Source of the DNA: Macrostomum lignano
Taxonomy: Eukaryota
Length of the DNA: 64,000 bases
Assembly (NCBI GenBank): GCA_002269645.1
Contig: NIVC01000566.1
Span: 248,001-312,000 of the forward strand
Direction: 5' to 3'
Shown here: positions 20,201 to 24,583 of the stretch, one piece after another
How the letters are laid out: each line of letters opens with the position of its first letter
Position numbering within the stretch: the first letter of the stretch is position 1
Notes under the pieces: model-generated
What the model was told of the DNA's origin: nothing
Seen by the model: the letters and a program-made list of their open reading frames with translations, nothing else
The model's database searches: none
Made by a program: the position numbers and the translations under genes

Positions 20201-23200
20201 GTGTTCAAACAGCTTTTGTCTGATTCCATTGAGCTAAACGCATCTGACTCGTACTCACCACCAATGTCACACGGTTACATGTATTCTCGCCCAGGAGGGC
20301 CAACCCCACGGCACAAGGAGTGTACATGCACATTCTGTGCGGCCCTGATAACTACTATAACTATCGGGCTAACAAACCAGCTAGTTTTTCCCGTCCAGAC
20401 TACTCTCTAGAAGTCCATGGTCTGTAGAATAAAAATGGCGAAAATGGTGGGTTGCCGAACCCCTCACCGGATGCGCTGCACCCGGAGCCGCTGTGGAAGA
20501 AGCGGCGGGAAGGACGTGCAAAAAATGCCCGGCCGATTTCACCGTCTCCAAGGCAACCTGGTCGCCGAGCCGGACTGGGTCGCCCTCCGTCTGCAGCTTG
20601 AAACGCGGCGCCAGTCGCAGCAGCGCCGAAGCGCCAGCAGAAGCGGCGCCAGCGCTGCACAACCCGGAGCGAAGGCCGCCGCCCGAGTTGGCGCCGGCGC
20701 GCACGCAGCGTCCGGTGAAGACGTGGCGCAGCTGCACAACCTGGCCGTAGTGAATCTGGCGCCCCGCCTGGCGCCGCTGCTCAGCCAGGTTGGCGGCCGC
20801 CTCTGCCGCTGCCGCAATCTGCCCAAAAATTAGGAATTTGTTCAAGTCGACATGTTGCACGGCTTGATGCAAGGCAGAGCTCAGAAAGTCCTATGCGCAC
20901 CTATGTTTACTGCTCAGCGGAATGCTCATGCCTGTTCGTCTCCCTGCTGGGTGCAGGGGCGCGGCCAAGAGTCTTTATCGAGGGGGCATCACTTCATAGA
21001 GGGAGCACAACTTCATGGAGGGAGCACCACTTCATGGAGGGAGCACAACTTCATGGAGGGAGCACCACTTCATGGAGAGAGCATCACTTCATAGAGGGAG
21101 CACAACTTCATGGAGGGAGCACAACTTCATAGAGGGAGCATCAATTCATGGAGGGAGCATCAATTCATGGAGGGAGCATCAATTCATGGAGGGAGCATCA
21201 ATTCATGGAGGGAGCATCACTTCATAGAGGGAGCACAACTTCATGGAGGGAGCACCACTTCATAGAGGGAGCACAACTTCATGGAGGGAGCACCACTTCA
21301 TGGAGAGAGCATCACTTCATAGAGGGAGCACAACTTCATGGAGGGAGCACAACTTCATGGAGGGAGCATCAATTCATGGAGGGAGCATCAATTCATGGAG
21401 GGAGCACCACTTCATAGAGGGAGCATCACTTCATAGAGGGAGCACAACTTCATGGAGGGAGCATCAATTCATGGAGGGAGCATCACTTCATGGAGGGAGC
21501 ATCACTTCATAGAGGGAGCATCAATTCATGGAGGGAGCATCAATTCATGGAGGGAGCATCAATACATGGAGGGAGCATCAATTCATGGAGGGAGCATCAA
21601 TACATGGAGGGAGCATCAATTCATGGAGGGAGCACCACTTCATGGAGGGAGCACCACTTCATAGAGGGAGCATCAATTCATGGAGGGAGCACAACTTCAT
21701 GGAGGGAGCATCAATTCATGGAGGGAGCATCAATTCATGGAGGGAGCATCAATTCATGGAGGGAGCATCAATTCATGGAGGGAGCATCAATTCATGGAGG
21801 GAGCATCAATTCATGGAGGGAGCATCAATTCATGGAGGGAGCATCACTTCATAGAGGGAGCATCAATTCATGGAGGGAGCATCAATTCATGGAGGGAGCA
21901 TCAATTCATGGAGGGAGCACAACTTCATGGAGGGAGCATCAATTCATGGAGGGAGCATCAATTCATGGAGGGAGCATCAATTCATGGAGGGAGCATCAAT
22001 TCATGGAGGGAGCATCAATTCATGGAGGGAGCATCAATTCATGGAGGGAGCATCAATTCATGGAGGGAGCATCAATTCATGGAGGGAGCATCAATTCATG
22101 GAGGGAGCATCAATTCATGGAGGGAGCATCAATTCATGGAGGGAGCATCAATTCATGGAGGGAGCACAACTTCATGGAGGGAGCATCACTTCATGGAGGG
22201 AGCATCACTTCATGGAGGGAGCATCAATTCATTTAGTGAGAAATCTATACGAGCGTAAGGGGGAGAGGGAGATGGATAGGGAGAATGTCATTCTGCTAAA
22301 TAAGTTTGTAAGGCAAAGAATGAGGTTAGGGAGATGCGCCAGCACTGGAGAAGGGTAGAGAAGGGAGGGGCTGAGCTGAGAGAGGCGGGAGTTGCGAGGA
22401 GGATCGGAGAGAGACAACAAAGAAAAAATTGTACCCAGCGACTCACCTTCAACTGAGTGAGGCGGGCTTTCACGGCGGGCTCCAGCTCCGTCTCCTCGGG
22501 GCCAGTGACGGAAGCCAGCAGTTTCCGGTGCTGCTTCTGCAGTTTGTAGCAGTCGGGAGCGCAGATCTCGAAGGACAGCGCTGTGGAAGTTTCACGGGCT
22601 ACTTTTTGCTGGAGCTACGGAGATCACTTAGAAATGATTCAGGTGTCATTTTTCGAAGCAGGGACTTCTTTGCAGGCCCTGTCATGGATTTCTCAATTTC
22701 TGATGGAGGCCTGCATGTTTCATTCTTAGTGGGATAAAAGACCGTATTTTAAATGCAAACAATCATTTTGACTGTGTTATCGTCTCATTAAGACTTGCGT
22801 TTAACATTTTAACATTAAAATGTAAGATTTGACTTTTGATGTCACTTTAAGTTCCCCAGTAGCTGCAAAGAAACCAAGCTAAATTTTCGAGAATACTTCG
22901 AAGCCTAAAGAATAAAGTAGAACAACGACTTTGGCTACTCAAAAAGCGCTTCCCGAAAAGTTTTGTAGATTTTTCGATAGTCTCTCAAATGGAAAGAACA
23001 AGTTTGTCTCCGTGCGGTATCAAATTTAACGTTGCACATTTCAATCGGAATCCGATACGAAGCCACGCCTTACAGACTGGCTGCAGCAGTGACAGAGGCT
23101 TCAAACCTTGGCCCAGGTGATATCCAACACTTGAACAAATAGTTACGGCTCAAGGAGTCGGGGCGGATCGTCGGGCTATAAATTGTGATTGTGTAAGGTC

Positions 23201-24583
23201 AGCAGAAAGCAAAAATGTTGGAAACCCAGCTAGATTCTCTCAGAGTGGATTTTTTAATCTCAAGCTTAAAATGAGAGTTCTGTGGGTCGTCACCTTGCTG
23301 GTCTGTATTGTCTTGGCATTTGGTGAGTGGCTCACTCAAGGACCATTAGTTTAGTCACCTGATAGACACTGTCATGGATGCTCTGGTACACCAGGGCCAC
23401 ACAGAGCAGACAGAAAGAGCAAAACAAAATTGCTTTTCAGACAATTCCGAAGCGGCGCCAAGATGGAAGCTGCGGCCTCTGCGAAACGGCGGGTTCGCCA
23501 AGAGCCCGTTCCAGAAACTTCGCAGATTTTTCAACCGCGGGAAAGGCAGGAACCCGAACAGGCTAACTCATGGTGGCTCTAGAGGCAACTCCGGTCATTG
23601 GAAAGACGGATCAAGCATGAGGATGGGGATCCGTGGAATAATTTATCAATAGGCAAGGCCGGGTGAGTCAGCATCCGGTAGTTCAGCTGCAGTTGGCAAC
23701 CAACACCCCAACCAGCTGGTGAATACGTCAATAATAATGAGCTCCATGACTTCTGACAAACCGATCTGATTTGGTGTTGGTTGCCCCTCGGGTTCACAGC
23801 AAAATAAACAGTTTGGACTCCGAGTTTTCATTGCATGTTGTTTTCTGTGATTGTTTATTTGTGCTTAAAGACTCATGTTAGTGCCCGCACTTTCCCACTG
23901 TGCGAGCAGTTCAGAGAGCCTCAGATTTCTCACCTTGGCTGTCCGGGCACTGCGGCTGCTGCTTGCCGCCACCGCTGCGGACCATCAGGCAGTCGTGCAG
24001 GGAGCTGCGTGAATTTTGAGAATTGGCATGGAACATTGTGCTTTCGGGTTCAGGAAAGCAGATTAGACAGAGATATAACGGACAGACAGACCGACAGACA
24101 GACAGACAGACAGACAGACAAACAGACAGACAGACCGACAGACAGACAGACAGACAGACAGACAGACAGACAGACAGACAGACAGGCAGATAGGCAGACA
24201 GACAGACAGACAGACAGACAGACAGACAGACAGACAGACAGACAGACAGACAGGCAGATAGGCAGAAAGACAGACAGACAGACAGACAGACAGTCAGACA
24301 GACAGACAGACAGACAGACAGACAGACAGACAGACAGACAGACAGACAGACAGACAGACAGATAGGCAGACAGACAGACAGACACGCACACAGACAGACA
24401 GACAGACAGACAGACAGACAGACAGACAGACAGACAGACAGCAGCAGCAGCTCACCCGGACTCTGCAGCAAACGCGAATCCTCCACCATCAACAGAGTAC
24501 AGGGCGACGGTGTCACCGAACCGCAGAAGGCCGTCTTCGCCGCGGCCCAGCCGGTCAACCGCAGGTGTGTTGGCAAGCTGCAT
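2225..24583 (-). CDS. ITPR: Divergent inositol 1,4,5-trisphosphate receptor-like protein, N-terminal ~1,700 aa (suppressor/MIR beta-trefoils, RIH domains); channel domain not in window
   Basis: Phase-compatible exons: 24583-24456, 24004-23934, 22580-22447, 20818-20468, 20110-19595, 18063-17985, 17898-17828, 16729-16604, 16522-16385, 15151-14963, 14521-14399, 12245-12015, 11540-11469, 11396-11157, 11032-10783, 10706-10607, 10173-9821 (internal boundaries unresolved), 8649-8405, 8288-8153, 7413-7108, 6765-6201 (-1 frameshift at 6484-6487), 5239-5125, 4361-4275, 4204-4100, 4009-3751, 2366-2225. Colinear IP3R motifs: [106 protein letters not shown]. Confidence 0.9.
2655..3016. repeat. 17-bp minisatellite (GCTTTTAGCGACTTTTT)n
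   Basis: Visible tandem units. Confidence 0.96.
3018..3232. repeat. ~63-bp tandem repeat, ~3.3 copies
   Basis: CCTGAGTGCTGC..GAGTTCAC..TCGCTTCCGGCTGGCGAAAGTTCACCGGACACCGGCCC repeated. Confidence 0.92.
4503..5080. repeat. 20-bp minisatellite (CTGACTACCTCACTGGCTCA)n
   Basis: Visible tandem units in an ITPR-like intron. Confidence 0.95.
5561..5810. mobile_element. Solo arm of the foldback/MITE family found at 59634-60701
   Basis: CAAGGACTAGTCAAGCAGAAGGACGGGAAAC...GGCAGACCCAGTGTTCAT..GCTCTATTGATATTCATAAAGCTTTT matches both arms of the element at 59.6-60.7 kb. Confidence 0.85.
7495..8035. repeat. 30-bp minisatellite (GATCGCTGAGTTCAAAGTGGAGGGTTTCCT)n
   Basis: Visible tandem units, some 33-bp variants. 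Confidence 0.96.
8688..9690. repeat. 30-bp minisatellite (GTGCACAGAGAGTGCGGTAAGGACGCTTCA)n
   Basis: Visible tandem units. Confidence 0.96.
10390..10545. repeat. Short 23/30-bp tandem repeat (CAGCTGTTTGGAGAG core)
   Basis: About 6 units. Confidence 0.9.
11595..11795. repeat. 37-bp tandem repeat (GGGGAGAGGAGAGGCAGCCACACCCCAAATAGGGTCT)n
   Basis: About 5 units. Confidence 0.92.
12440..12801 (-). mobile_element. tRNA-derived SINE (family B), full length with TSD
   Basis: Minus-strand head GGGGCCGTAGCCCAGCGGTAGCG (A box) ...GGCTCGATTCC (B box), A-rich tail, 13-bp direct repeat AATCTATGATATT at 12427-12439 and 12802-12814; second copy at 52010-52285. Confidence 0.88.
13970..14380. repeat. 16-bp minisatellite (TGATCCCCTGACCCTC)n
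   Basis: Visible tandem units. Confidence 0.97.
14690..14958. repeat. (ATCA)n microsatellite
   Basis: Visible, degenerate at the left end. Confidence 0.93.
15158..16276. repeat. 41-bp minisatellite (ATTCATTGGATTGTGTATGAGCAGCAGGCATCTAGATCACA)n
   Basis: About 27 near-identical units starting a few bases from the acceptor at 15152-15154. Confidence 0.98.
16822..17765. repeat. ~940-bp homopyrimidine/homopurine tract built from a 14-bp unit (TTCTCTCCCTCCCC)
   Basis: Almost exclusively C/T on the + strand. Confidence 0.96.
18137..19495. repeat. 40/42-bp minisatellite (GAGAGTGAGAGTCAGGGGAGCTGAC[AA]AGTTGGAACAGAATG)n
   Basis: Visible tandem units. Confidence 0.97.
20985..22232. repeat. 19-bp minisatellite (GAGGGAGCATCAATTCATG)n
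   Basis: Visible tandem units. Confidence 0.97.
23271..23652 (+). CDS. Small secreted cationic peptide precursor (87 aa), nested antisense in ITPR-like intron 2
   Basis: Exons 23271-23322 ([18 protein letters not shown]|GTGAGT) and 23441-23652 (TTTTCAG acceptor, compatible phase 1). TATAAA at ~23177, AATAAA at ~23803. Hydrophobic signal-like N-terminus ending NSEA, then a 65-aa R/K/G-rich peptide. Confidence 0.72.
24081..24440. repeat. (GACA)n microsatellite in ITPR-like intron 1
   Basis: Visible. Confidence 0.97.

Follow-up and report, generated by a model that had tools for sequence, protein, structure and literature searches.

Positions 23178-23830 on the plus strand of a 64,000-nt stretch of the Macrostomum lignano genome (contig NIVC01000566.1; hereafter the window) raise the question of whether a small secreted cationic peptide is encoded there, antisense within an intron of an ITPR-like gene, and, if so, what such a peptide might do. 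A sequence-only reading of the window had proposed both the peptide gene and its nested position; we assessed these proposals at the levels of gene structure, precursor, host gene and function.

Structure of the peptide gene and its sister copy

The proposed gene consisted of a TATAAA box, an ATG exon, a GTGAGT/TTTTCAG intron, a stop codon and an AATAAA signal, and every one of these elements was present at the position assigned to it. They are arranged as follows:

23178-23183, plus strand: TATA box TATAAA, read directly and unchanged in the sister locus described below
23221-23270, plus strand: 5' UTR (minimum extent), 97% identical to the sister locus
23271-23322, plus strand: coding part of exon 1, 52 nt, phase 1, encoding 17 residues and the first base of Asp18
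23323-23440, plus strand: intron of 118 nt, phase 1, with the donor GTGAGT at 23323 and the acceptor TTTTCAG
23441-23652, plus strand: coding part of exon 2, encoding the DNSEA c-region and the 65-aa cationic peptide and ending in a TAG stop codon (23650-52)
23653-23830, plus strand: 3' UTR with AATAAA at 23803-23808, conserved in the sister locus

The start ATG at 23271 stands in the context AAAATGA, the intron reads ...TTGCTTTTCAG at its 3' end (23440), and the GT..AG ends of this 118-nt intron occur on the plus strand only. Joining 23322 to 23441 yielded exactly the 87-aa product that had been predicted, and the open-reading-frame track does break the gene, as had been remarked, into a 27-aa leader ORF (23271-23354) and a 92-aa ORF (23374-23652). 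The coding part of exon 1 corresponds to the n- and h-regions of the signal peptide. GC3 in the exon 2 frame was 0.60, as compared with 0.48-0.49 at positions 1 and 2, and this elevation has the same direction as that in the known genes of the window. Poly(A) cleavage presumably takes place ~15-25 nt past AATAAA, and this compact TATA-driven two-exon gene would thus give rise to an mRNA of about 0.5 kb. A scan of the locus against Rfam returned sub-threshold matches only, and no known ncRNA accounted for the locus; an intronic H/ACA snoRNA (SNORA43) was rejected, since the match scored 21.7 bits where the gathering score is 80, it lacked the second hairpin, its ACA box would sit in exon 2, and the fold z-score was -1.26.

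The sole homolog of the product was the GenBank entry "hypothetical protein BOX15_Mlig027405g1, partial" of M. lignano (gene Mlig027405.g1), which was 90-91% identical across all 87 residues and shared the F|D exon junction. Its gene lies on contig NIVC01004032.1 (assembly GCA_002269645.1 / Mlig_3_7), which is collinear with, and 87-99% identical to, window positions 10994 to about 33000; in both loci the peptide gene is followed by actin and adh_short, and the ITPR-like exons are also common to both. The sister locus, 96% identical to the gene in the window and 87-94% in the flanks, is a separate duplicated locus, distinct from the window's own copy. Its gene model spans 432 nt for 105 codons, with the junction located as in the window. 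The GenBank annotation of this assembly was built from RNA-seq and de novo transcripts only, with ORFs called by TransDecoder (PMC5730564), and a spliced plus-strand mRNA therefore exists for the sister copy. The sister gene is annotated as 5'-partial because its UTR was translated; the 5' UTR stretch, when translated in frame, corresponds to the N-terminal 16 residues of the partial GenBank protein. The CDS 5' end of this transcript-derived model maps to window position 23223, ~40 nt 3' of the TATA box, and the transcript of the peptide gene probably starts at about 23208-23223. The single upstream ATG, at 23215, is located 5' of the mapped transcript end. A transcript-derived model with the same junction at the sister locus indicates that the configuration is more than chance, and the two-exon, spliced, plus-strand peptide gene of M. 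lignano was confirmed as real at the sequence level. It is not strictly "hidden", as had been supposed, because the sister copy is already known as a GenBank hypothetical protein; the copy in the window, which may be expressed as well, is unannotated, and its own product was absent from the protein collection searched.

The TATA box, ATG, GT/AG ends, stop codon and AATAAA were all kept in both copies. In the coding part of exon 1, 51 of 52 nt were the same, the single change being synonymous, and exon 2 was 96.7% identical over its first 150 nt and 80.6% over its last 62 nt. Only one indel, of 3 nt and in frame, separated the two coding sequences. The C-terminal 15 codons had diverged heavily, including a patch that reads SSMRMGIRG in the window and PGMMNQARG in the sister; the sister protein further differed by an extra Arg, R46S and L59P, and its 3' UTR is 81 nt longer than that of the window copy.

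Leader, mature peptide and homology searches

The 87-aa precursor comprises a 22-residue leader and a mature part of 65 aa. The hydrophobic leader that had been proposed scored as a strong secretory-type signal in a rule-based check, which looks for a basic n-region, an uninterrupted h-region of 7-15 residues and a polar c-region with small residues at -3/-1: we found an n-region M-R, a 15-residue h-region and the c-region DNSEA, with predicted cleavage at SEA|AP (Ser at -3, Ala at -1). The 12-residue Kyte-Doolittle mean of the h-region, 3.26, was equalled by only one of the 113 ATG ORFs of at least 60 aa in the window, and AlphaFold predicted a helix at residues 2-20. As a classical cleavable signal peptide, the leader would route the chain into the ER, and its cleavage would free a peptide of ~65 aa to be exported from a secretory cell.

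A recount of the mature part gave the same composition as before, namely 11 Arg, 5 Lys, 1 Asp and no Cys. The peptide (~7.5 kDa) is rich in Arg, Gly and Asn, with a net charge of about +15 at pH 7 and a pI of about 12, and its small size, positive charge and lack of disulfides are in agreement with those of linear alpha-helical cationic antimicrobial peptides. The likely amphipathic helix suggested for it was, however, not substantiated. The best hydrophobic moment (muH) was 0.87 for an 11-mer, reached by 70 of 1000 shuffled sequences (7%), and 0.60 for an 18-mer, reached by 201 of 1000 (20%), and hence lay within the shuffle range; in this part AlphaFold gave only one 9-residue helix, at residues 40-48 (pLDDT about 64), the rest of the chain being disordered.

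That no family could be recognised was borne out by two very large protein searches. Neither a word-indexed search of 5.8 billion protein clusters nor an exhaustive HMMER search over 1.84 billion representatives returned a homolog besides the sister protein, and Pfam contained no family for the peptide even at E <= 1. A metagenome scan likewise added no homolog to the sister copy, and tblastn, which had been called for, recovered no paralogs in the window or the sister locus. No ortholog outside M. lignano was found in these searches, in which an 87-aa query has little power. The identifier Mlig027405 and five peptide fragments were absent from the paper text covered by a literature search, the identifier was also absent from the supplements of PMC5730564, PMC5816591, PMC12896417, PMC12732829, PMC7336406 and PMC5977470, whose files use other ids and may be truncated, and the peptide letters were absent from the one Macrostomum supplement set searched for them. 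Judged by its sequence, the peptide appears to be a lineage-restricted orphan of no recognisable family.

The candidate ITPR-like host gene

The gene had further been placed within an intron of an ITPR-like gene. On the minus strand, the following features bear on this proposal:

24456-24583, minus strand: candidate host exon 1, 42 residues followed by a GTGAGC donor
23934-24004, minus strand: candidate host exon 2, 24 residues, with a CAG acceptor and a GTGAGA donor, in a phase that fits exon 1
22939-22981, minus strand: candidate host exon 3, 15 residues, with a polypyrimidine tract at the acceptor and a matching phase; its 3' boundary is tentative
20381-20872, minus strand: ORF containing the best-supported ITPR/RyR N-terminal exon (Pfam Ins145_P3_rec)

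The ORF at 20381-20872 matched positions 89-182 of the Ins145_P3_rec profile with an E value of 1.6e-10 and 40.9 bits, where the cutoff is 23, and ITPR1 chains in the PDB with an E value of 5e-8. Upon addition of the three candidate exons, the Pfam match was extended to positions 5-181 (43.5 bits) and the PDB match to chain residues 27-210. Candidate exon 1 aligned to 'GDICSLYAEGSTNGF' of ITPR1, extending a match that originates in the downstream exon, and was 95% identical in the sister locus, although not significant alone; exon 2 aligned to 'LGLVDDRCVV' (97% identity in the sister locus), and 10 residues of exon 3 aligned to 'KKFRDCLFKL', an in-frame stop following next unless a GT..AG mini-intron of 34 nt is spliced out. 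The whole peptide gene is contained between candidate exons 2 and 3, taking up about 650 nt of a putative host intron of roughly 950 nt, and this layout was kept in the sister locus. With candidate ITPR-like exons of the minus strand on either side of the gene, an antisense position within an intron of a divergent ITPR-like gene is plausible on these alignments. The three upstream candidates on their own, however, gave no ITPR match in the PDB, and no annotated protein corresponding to the host was found with single-exon or concatenated-exon queries. A 59-aa minus-strand ORF over exon 2 of the peptide gene (23355-23534) carries 'FW' as in ITPR and was discarded, as its order is wrong for the host protein. 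The arrangement resembles that of other animal genes nested in introns on the opposite strand in that the whole unit sits between the candidate exons; it differs in that the host is very divergent and unannotated, and its upstream exons are extensions of a weak alignment.

Possible functions of the peptide

We consider that there is about an even chance that the locus is a TATA-driven two-exon gene for a secreted polycation, host-defence-like or secretion-associated, with a duplicated sister copy. Such a peptide would most likely act by binding electrostatically to polyanionic targets outside the cell, for instance microbial envelopes, mucus or the glycocalyx, which would suggest a polycation of this kind and not a folded enzyme or ligand. 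Linear cationic host-defence peptides that lack Cys include Hydra arminins, the glycine-rich armadillidin and the nematode NLP/caenacins. Like these invertebrate peptides, the product has a signal peptide followed by a short, basic, unstructured and taxon-restricted chain rich in Gly, Arg, Asn and aromatic residues; unlike them, it has no anionic pro-piece and no significant amphipathic segment, and it shows no sequence homology to them. To our knowledge, very few antimicrobial effectors have been described in free-living flatworms.

The peptide could instead be a seminal-fluid (prostate), cement, pharyngeal, rhabdite or adhesive-system protein acting in mating or secretion mechanics and not in defence, a reading that we hold to be unlikely. 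M. lignano is rich in orphan, gland-limited transcripts with signal peptides: of the 76 transcripts confined to the prostate, 65 contained a translatable ORF, 38 of these with a predicted signal peptide, and several lack homologs (PMC5977470). That the C-terminal tail has changed rapidly between the two copies would also suit fast-evolving reproductive genes. The absence of the identifier and the peptide fragments from the seminal-fluid screen supplements counts weakly against such a role, these files being keyed by other ids.

Rather unlikely, too, is a young ORF that is transcribed yet functionless, its leader and cationic tail being unselected, or a window copy that is a silent or decaying duplicate. 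Orphan status and the missing annotation of the window copy would be expected under such neutrality, as would the intron and flanks, which were conserved between the copies to the level of the exons. The whole-CDS dN/dS was 0.58 (6 synonymous and 12 non-synonymous changes; p = 0.26), not distinguishable from 1 and uninformative at this divergence; in the same two loci, the ITPR-like exons gave 0.58 and actin 0.15, and purifying selection was thus not demonstrated, the value for the peptide being no lower than that for the ITPR-like exons. Neighbouring genes in the window bore marks of decay or of faulty assembly, among them a frameshift in actin, which could be taken in the same sense. Against this, neither copy has lost its ORF, splice sites, TATA box or poly(A) signal, the indel is in frame, the frame has raised GC3, and a near-ideal signal peptide begins at the transcript's first AUG. 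Moreover, the first 72 codons contained an excess of synonymous changes (4 synonymous, 2 non-synonymous; Fisher p = 0.03, with the split chosen post hoc).

A more specific form of the defence reading, in which the peptide represents a Macrostomum-specific class of disordered Gly/Arg-rich host-defence (or microbiome-shaping) peptides whose expression, from within the first introns of the ITPR-like gene, is coupled to the activity of that gene by antisense transcriptional interference, seems quite improbable.

Least probable is a prohormone or neuropeptide precursor, from which convertases would cut at basic sites, e.g. RR|FFNR-G-K, to release a short (S)FFNR-amide or other small signalling peptides from neurons or endocrine-like cells. 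As in flatworm prohormones, the precursor is small (<100 aa), secretory and Cys-free, with basic residues; the block FFNRGKGR, with its Gly followed by a basic residue, is kept in both copies, and the conserved portion is the N-terminal three quarters. However, RR before this block is RS in the sister, and SRRG occurs in the sister only, so that the two copies do not share their cleavage sites; GKGR also differs from the canonical GKR/GRR, and there are no acidic spacers, no repeated amidated units and no neuropeptide family match in Pfam or the protein searches.

Returning to the secreted polycation, we regard the finding as sound and the gene as an ordinary one among thousands of lineage-restricted small secretory genes. 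If secreted and active, the peptide would lengthen the very short list of secreted peptides from flatworms by one uncharacterised effector, and transgenesis and RNAi make testing easy in M. lignano. The main practical value lies in drawing attention to two genes missing from the annotation, the duplicate and a divergent ITPR-like one, and the compact promoter, with its TATA box 197 nt from the adjoining host exon, could serve as a small tissue-specific driver.

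Structure of the peptide gene and transcript evidence from its sister copy

All elements that the sequence-only reading had described for the peptide gene, namely the TATA box, ATG, splice sites, TAG and AATAAA, were recovered as listed below, and the ORF list indeed splits the gene, with leader and body appearing as separate ORFs.

Elements of the peptide gene
23178-23183, + strand, TATA box TATAAA, read from the sequence
23271, + strand, start codon ATG, with A at -3
23271-23322, + strand, coding part of the first exon, 52 nt, with the GTGAGT donor next
up to 23440, + strand, intron of 118 nt with a GTGAGT donor, ending with TTGCTTTTCAG
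23441-23652, + strand, second coding exon, with the terminal TAG
23803-23808, + strand, poly(A) signal AATAAA, read from the sequence

Splicing in phase 1 brings G and AC together as the Asp18 codon, and the mature part of the spliced 87-aa product comprises 65 residues (11 R, 5 K, 11 G, 1 D and no Cys). Among about 5.8 billion protein clusters searched, the single match was the hypothetical protein BOX15_Mlig027405g1 (partial, 104 aa) of Macrostomum lignano, which shows 90% identity across the entire query and spans the same F|D junction, and whose first 16 residues are an in-frame translation of the 5' UTR, a stretch also present in the window. The gene encoding this sister protein lies on contig NIVC01004032.1 (assembly GCA_002269645.1), upstream of an actin gene and then an adh_short gene, both of which neighbor the peptide gene in the window as well. 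By BLASTN, this contig was collinear with the window from 10994 to approximately 33000 at 87-99% identity. Judged from these shared neighbors and this collinearity, the window locus is a duplicated (homeologous) copy, distinct from the locus on NIVC01004032.1. In the M. lignano genome, duplicated non-repetitive blocks are reported to amount to approximately 180 Mb and tandem repeats to 15% (PMC5730564).

The GenBank annotation of Mlig_3_7 was built from transcripts only, that is, from StringTie/TACO RNA-seq assemblies and a de novo transcriptome, with TransDecoder used for the ORFs and trans-splicing and poly(A) reads for the transcript ends (PMC5730564); SRP082513 and SRR2682326 are among the data sets behind it. 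The sister gene model is therefore evidence, at the transcript level, that a + strand mRNA spliced at the same junction exists. Its CDS spans 432 nt for 105 codons, so that the same intron, at about 117 nt, is implied, and its 5' end maps to window position 23223, about 40 nt downstream of the TATA box, which should be the expected place of a TATA-directed start slightly truncated by the assembly. In the pairwise alignment of the two loci, the TATA box, ATG, donor, acceptor, stop and AATAAA were kept in both copies, and the sole indel in the CDS was of 3 nt. The GC3 of the proposed peptide frame was raised (0.60 vs 0.48-0.49), in the same direction as in the yardsticks of the window (actin, 0.95; a 456-aa ORF, 0.85; adh_short and ITPR-like exons, 0.68-0.70). 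No protein record for the window's own copy was found among the approximately 5.8 billion clusters, and its expression is thus inferred from the sister copy. These observations showed that the transcription unit of the peptide gene is conserved, that its signals are canonical and that the sister copy has a gene model derived from transcripts.

With respect to relatives, no Pfam family was detected in the product at E <= 1, and an exhaustive phmmer search of 1.84 billion representatives gave the sister protein as the sole match, which bears out the earlier failure to recognize a family. A metagenome scan gave zero matches, no paralog was found in the window or at the sister locus, and neither the gene id nor the peptide was mentioned in the paper texts or supplements searched. 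The peptide gene thus belongs to no defined family and is an orphan; as about 45 bits are needed for significance in such a library with an 87-residue query, and other Macrostomum genomes lay outside the search, missing orthologs are weak evidence. The window gene adds another copy, itself without annotation, to a hypothetical gene that was on deposit before, and joins the other small, lineage-restricted secretory genes.

The candidate ITPR-like host gene of the peptide gene

The sequence-only reading had placed the peptide gene within an intron of an ITPR-like gene, for which the following pieces were identified.

Pieces of the candidate host gene
20381-20872, - strand, ORF matching Pfam Ins145_P3_rec (ITPR/RyR N-terminal domain), E 1.6e-10, 40.9 bits vs a cutoff of 23, profile 89-182
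19457-20011, - strand, ORF with a weak Pfam match to MIR
24456-24583, - strand, candidate exon 1, with an ATG start and a GTGAGC donor at its end
23934-24004, - strand, candidate exon 2, 71 nt, acceptor CAG, donor GTGAGA
from 22981, - strand, candidate exon 3, with a polypyrimidine tract and an AG acceptor

Since the Ins145_P3_rec match starts at profile position 89, the first 88 positions must sit at higher coordinates. The phases agree across all candidate exons, and inclusion of the three upstream exons widened the match to profile 5-181 (43.5 bits); furthermore, PDB chains of the ITPR1 suppressor domain aligned with the host exons over residues 27-210 of 1xzz_A, with motif pairs including GDTVALY/GDICSLY, LHDCLMV/VDDRCVV and FREALFEL/FRDCLFKL. 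The three small upstream exons by themselves gave no match, and exon 3 is closed by an in-frame stop if a 34-nt mini-intron is not removed. No annotated protein matching any candidate host exon was found, nor was there a gene call over these exons in the sister contig. The peptide gene extends from 23178 to about 23830, and host intron 2 (22982-23933, 952 nt) would enclose it, with 197 nt remaining on the host acceptor side and about 126 nt towards the host donor. With candidate exons on either side, the peptide gene probably lies antisense inside this intron of the putative host.

As a whole, the putative divergent ITPR/RyR-like gene would span 6165-24583 on the minus strand, with RIH-like pieces seen by eye near 14400-14494 and 6394-6765.

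The predicted peptide, its divergence and its proposed role

By rule-based inspection, the leader appears to be a textbook signal peptide, with an n-region of MR, an h-region of 15 hydrophobic residues without a break (mean Kyte-Doolittle 3.1-3.3) and a c-region, DNSEA, having Ser at -3, Ala at -1 and Ala-Pro past the predicted cut; N-terminal hydrophobicity as high as this was found in one of the 113 ATG ORFs of the window. The mature part has a mass of 7.5 kDa, a pI of about 12 and a charge of about +15. AlphaFold, run with a two-sequence alignment as input, gave a mean pLDDT of 57.8, with helices predicted at residues 2-20, corresponding to the signal, and, over a shorter stretch, at 40-48 (PFQKLRRFF, pLDDT about 64), and the rest of the chain without structure. 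The amphipathic helix proposed earlier did not stand out; 7% of composition-preserving shuffles attained its hydrophobic moment for the 11-mer, and 20% did so for the 18-mer. The predicted product combines a secretory-type leader with a polycationic body predicted to be disordered.

Identity between the window copy and the sister copy
Promoter, 96%
5' UTR, 97%
Exon 1, 98%
Intron, 96.6%
Exon 2, first 150 nt, 96.7%
Last 62 coding nt, 80.6%
3' UTR, 88.5%

Between the two copies, the peptide CDS shows 6 synonymous and 12 non-synonymous differences (Nei-Gojobori dN/dS 0.58), with no departure from neutrality (p = 0.26); given the yardsticks from the same two loci (ITPR-like exons, 0.58; actin, 0.15), this test has little power at such divergence. 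In a post hoc split, codons 1-72 had 4 synonymous vs 2 non-synonymous differences (p = 0.03) and the last 15 codons 2 vs 10, suggesting constraint on the leader and N-terminal body and a tail that is free or evolves fast. Twelve inter-copy differences are bunched in 23591-23652, the last 62 coding bases (SSMRMGIRG vs PGMMNQARG, with GIIYQ* the same), and could represent a complex mutation, micro-conversion or local positive selection.

The 87-aa chain would enter the ER co-translationally, be cleaved after Ala22 (or Ala16) and secreted, and might act by binding polyanionic targets electrostatically. Ranked first was a host-defence-like or secretion-associated polycation; in mode of working it would come nearest to the linear cationic peptides without Cys that other invertebrates have, from which, however, it departs in amphipathicity, the sole structural criterion examined. 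Ranked second was a gland or seminal secretion, in line with a seminal-fluid screen of M. lignano in which orphan, signal-peptide-bearing gland transcripts were common (PMC5977470), and third a young functionless ORF. A prohormone came last: it could draw on one attractive motif, RR-FFNR-G-K, but the dibasic site flanking FFNR-G-K is not kept in the sister copy, and the precursor lacks acidic spacers.

Other features of the window

An H/ACA candidate, SNORA43 (Rfam), over the peptide intron (23346-23446, + strand) scored 21.7 bits vs a gathering score of 80 and was judged a chance match; its second hairpin is missing, the ACA box would fall in exon 2, and the fold z-score was -1.26. Positions 1-655 are an inverted copy of 25443-26097 (98.6% identity); these arms hold a CEAQGL-type minisatellite and flanking unique sequence, and between them lie the ITPR-like exons and the peptide gene. 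The inverted duplication may be real, or the assembly may have produced it. The window actin gene (+ strand) has, at about 27109-27130, one C fewer than the sister locus (TGCC-GGAGG vs TGCCCGGAGG), causing a frameshift within the conserved ERFRCPEALFQP stretch; the copies are otherwise 99.4% identical, and that of the window is either a pseudogene or carries a homopolymer error of the assembly.

Further coding features
32442-34131, - strand, adh_short dehydrogenase
36345-38914, - strand, Pyr_redox_2 flavoprotein, three exons
43866-44312, + strand, ODAD1 coiled coil, E 7e-47
55108-56478, + strand, 456-aa ORF, no family and no record found
61185-61517, + strand, sacsin-domain exon

Minisatellite and tetranucleotide arrays
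1079-2177
7407-8139
8676-9773
13800-14400
16650-17906
21490-22358
24050-24400
25860-26519
28218-30406
32370-33800
35026-36187
37060-37300
38667-40027
46772-47521

These arrays are very dense, with long spurious ORFs in all frames, and several are intronic in the ITPR-like, actin, adh_short and Pyr_redox genes; the many minisatellites fit the 15% of tandem repeats reported for M. lignano (PMC5730564).
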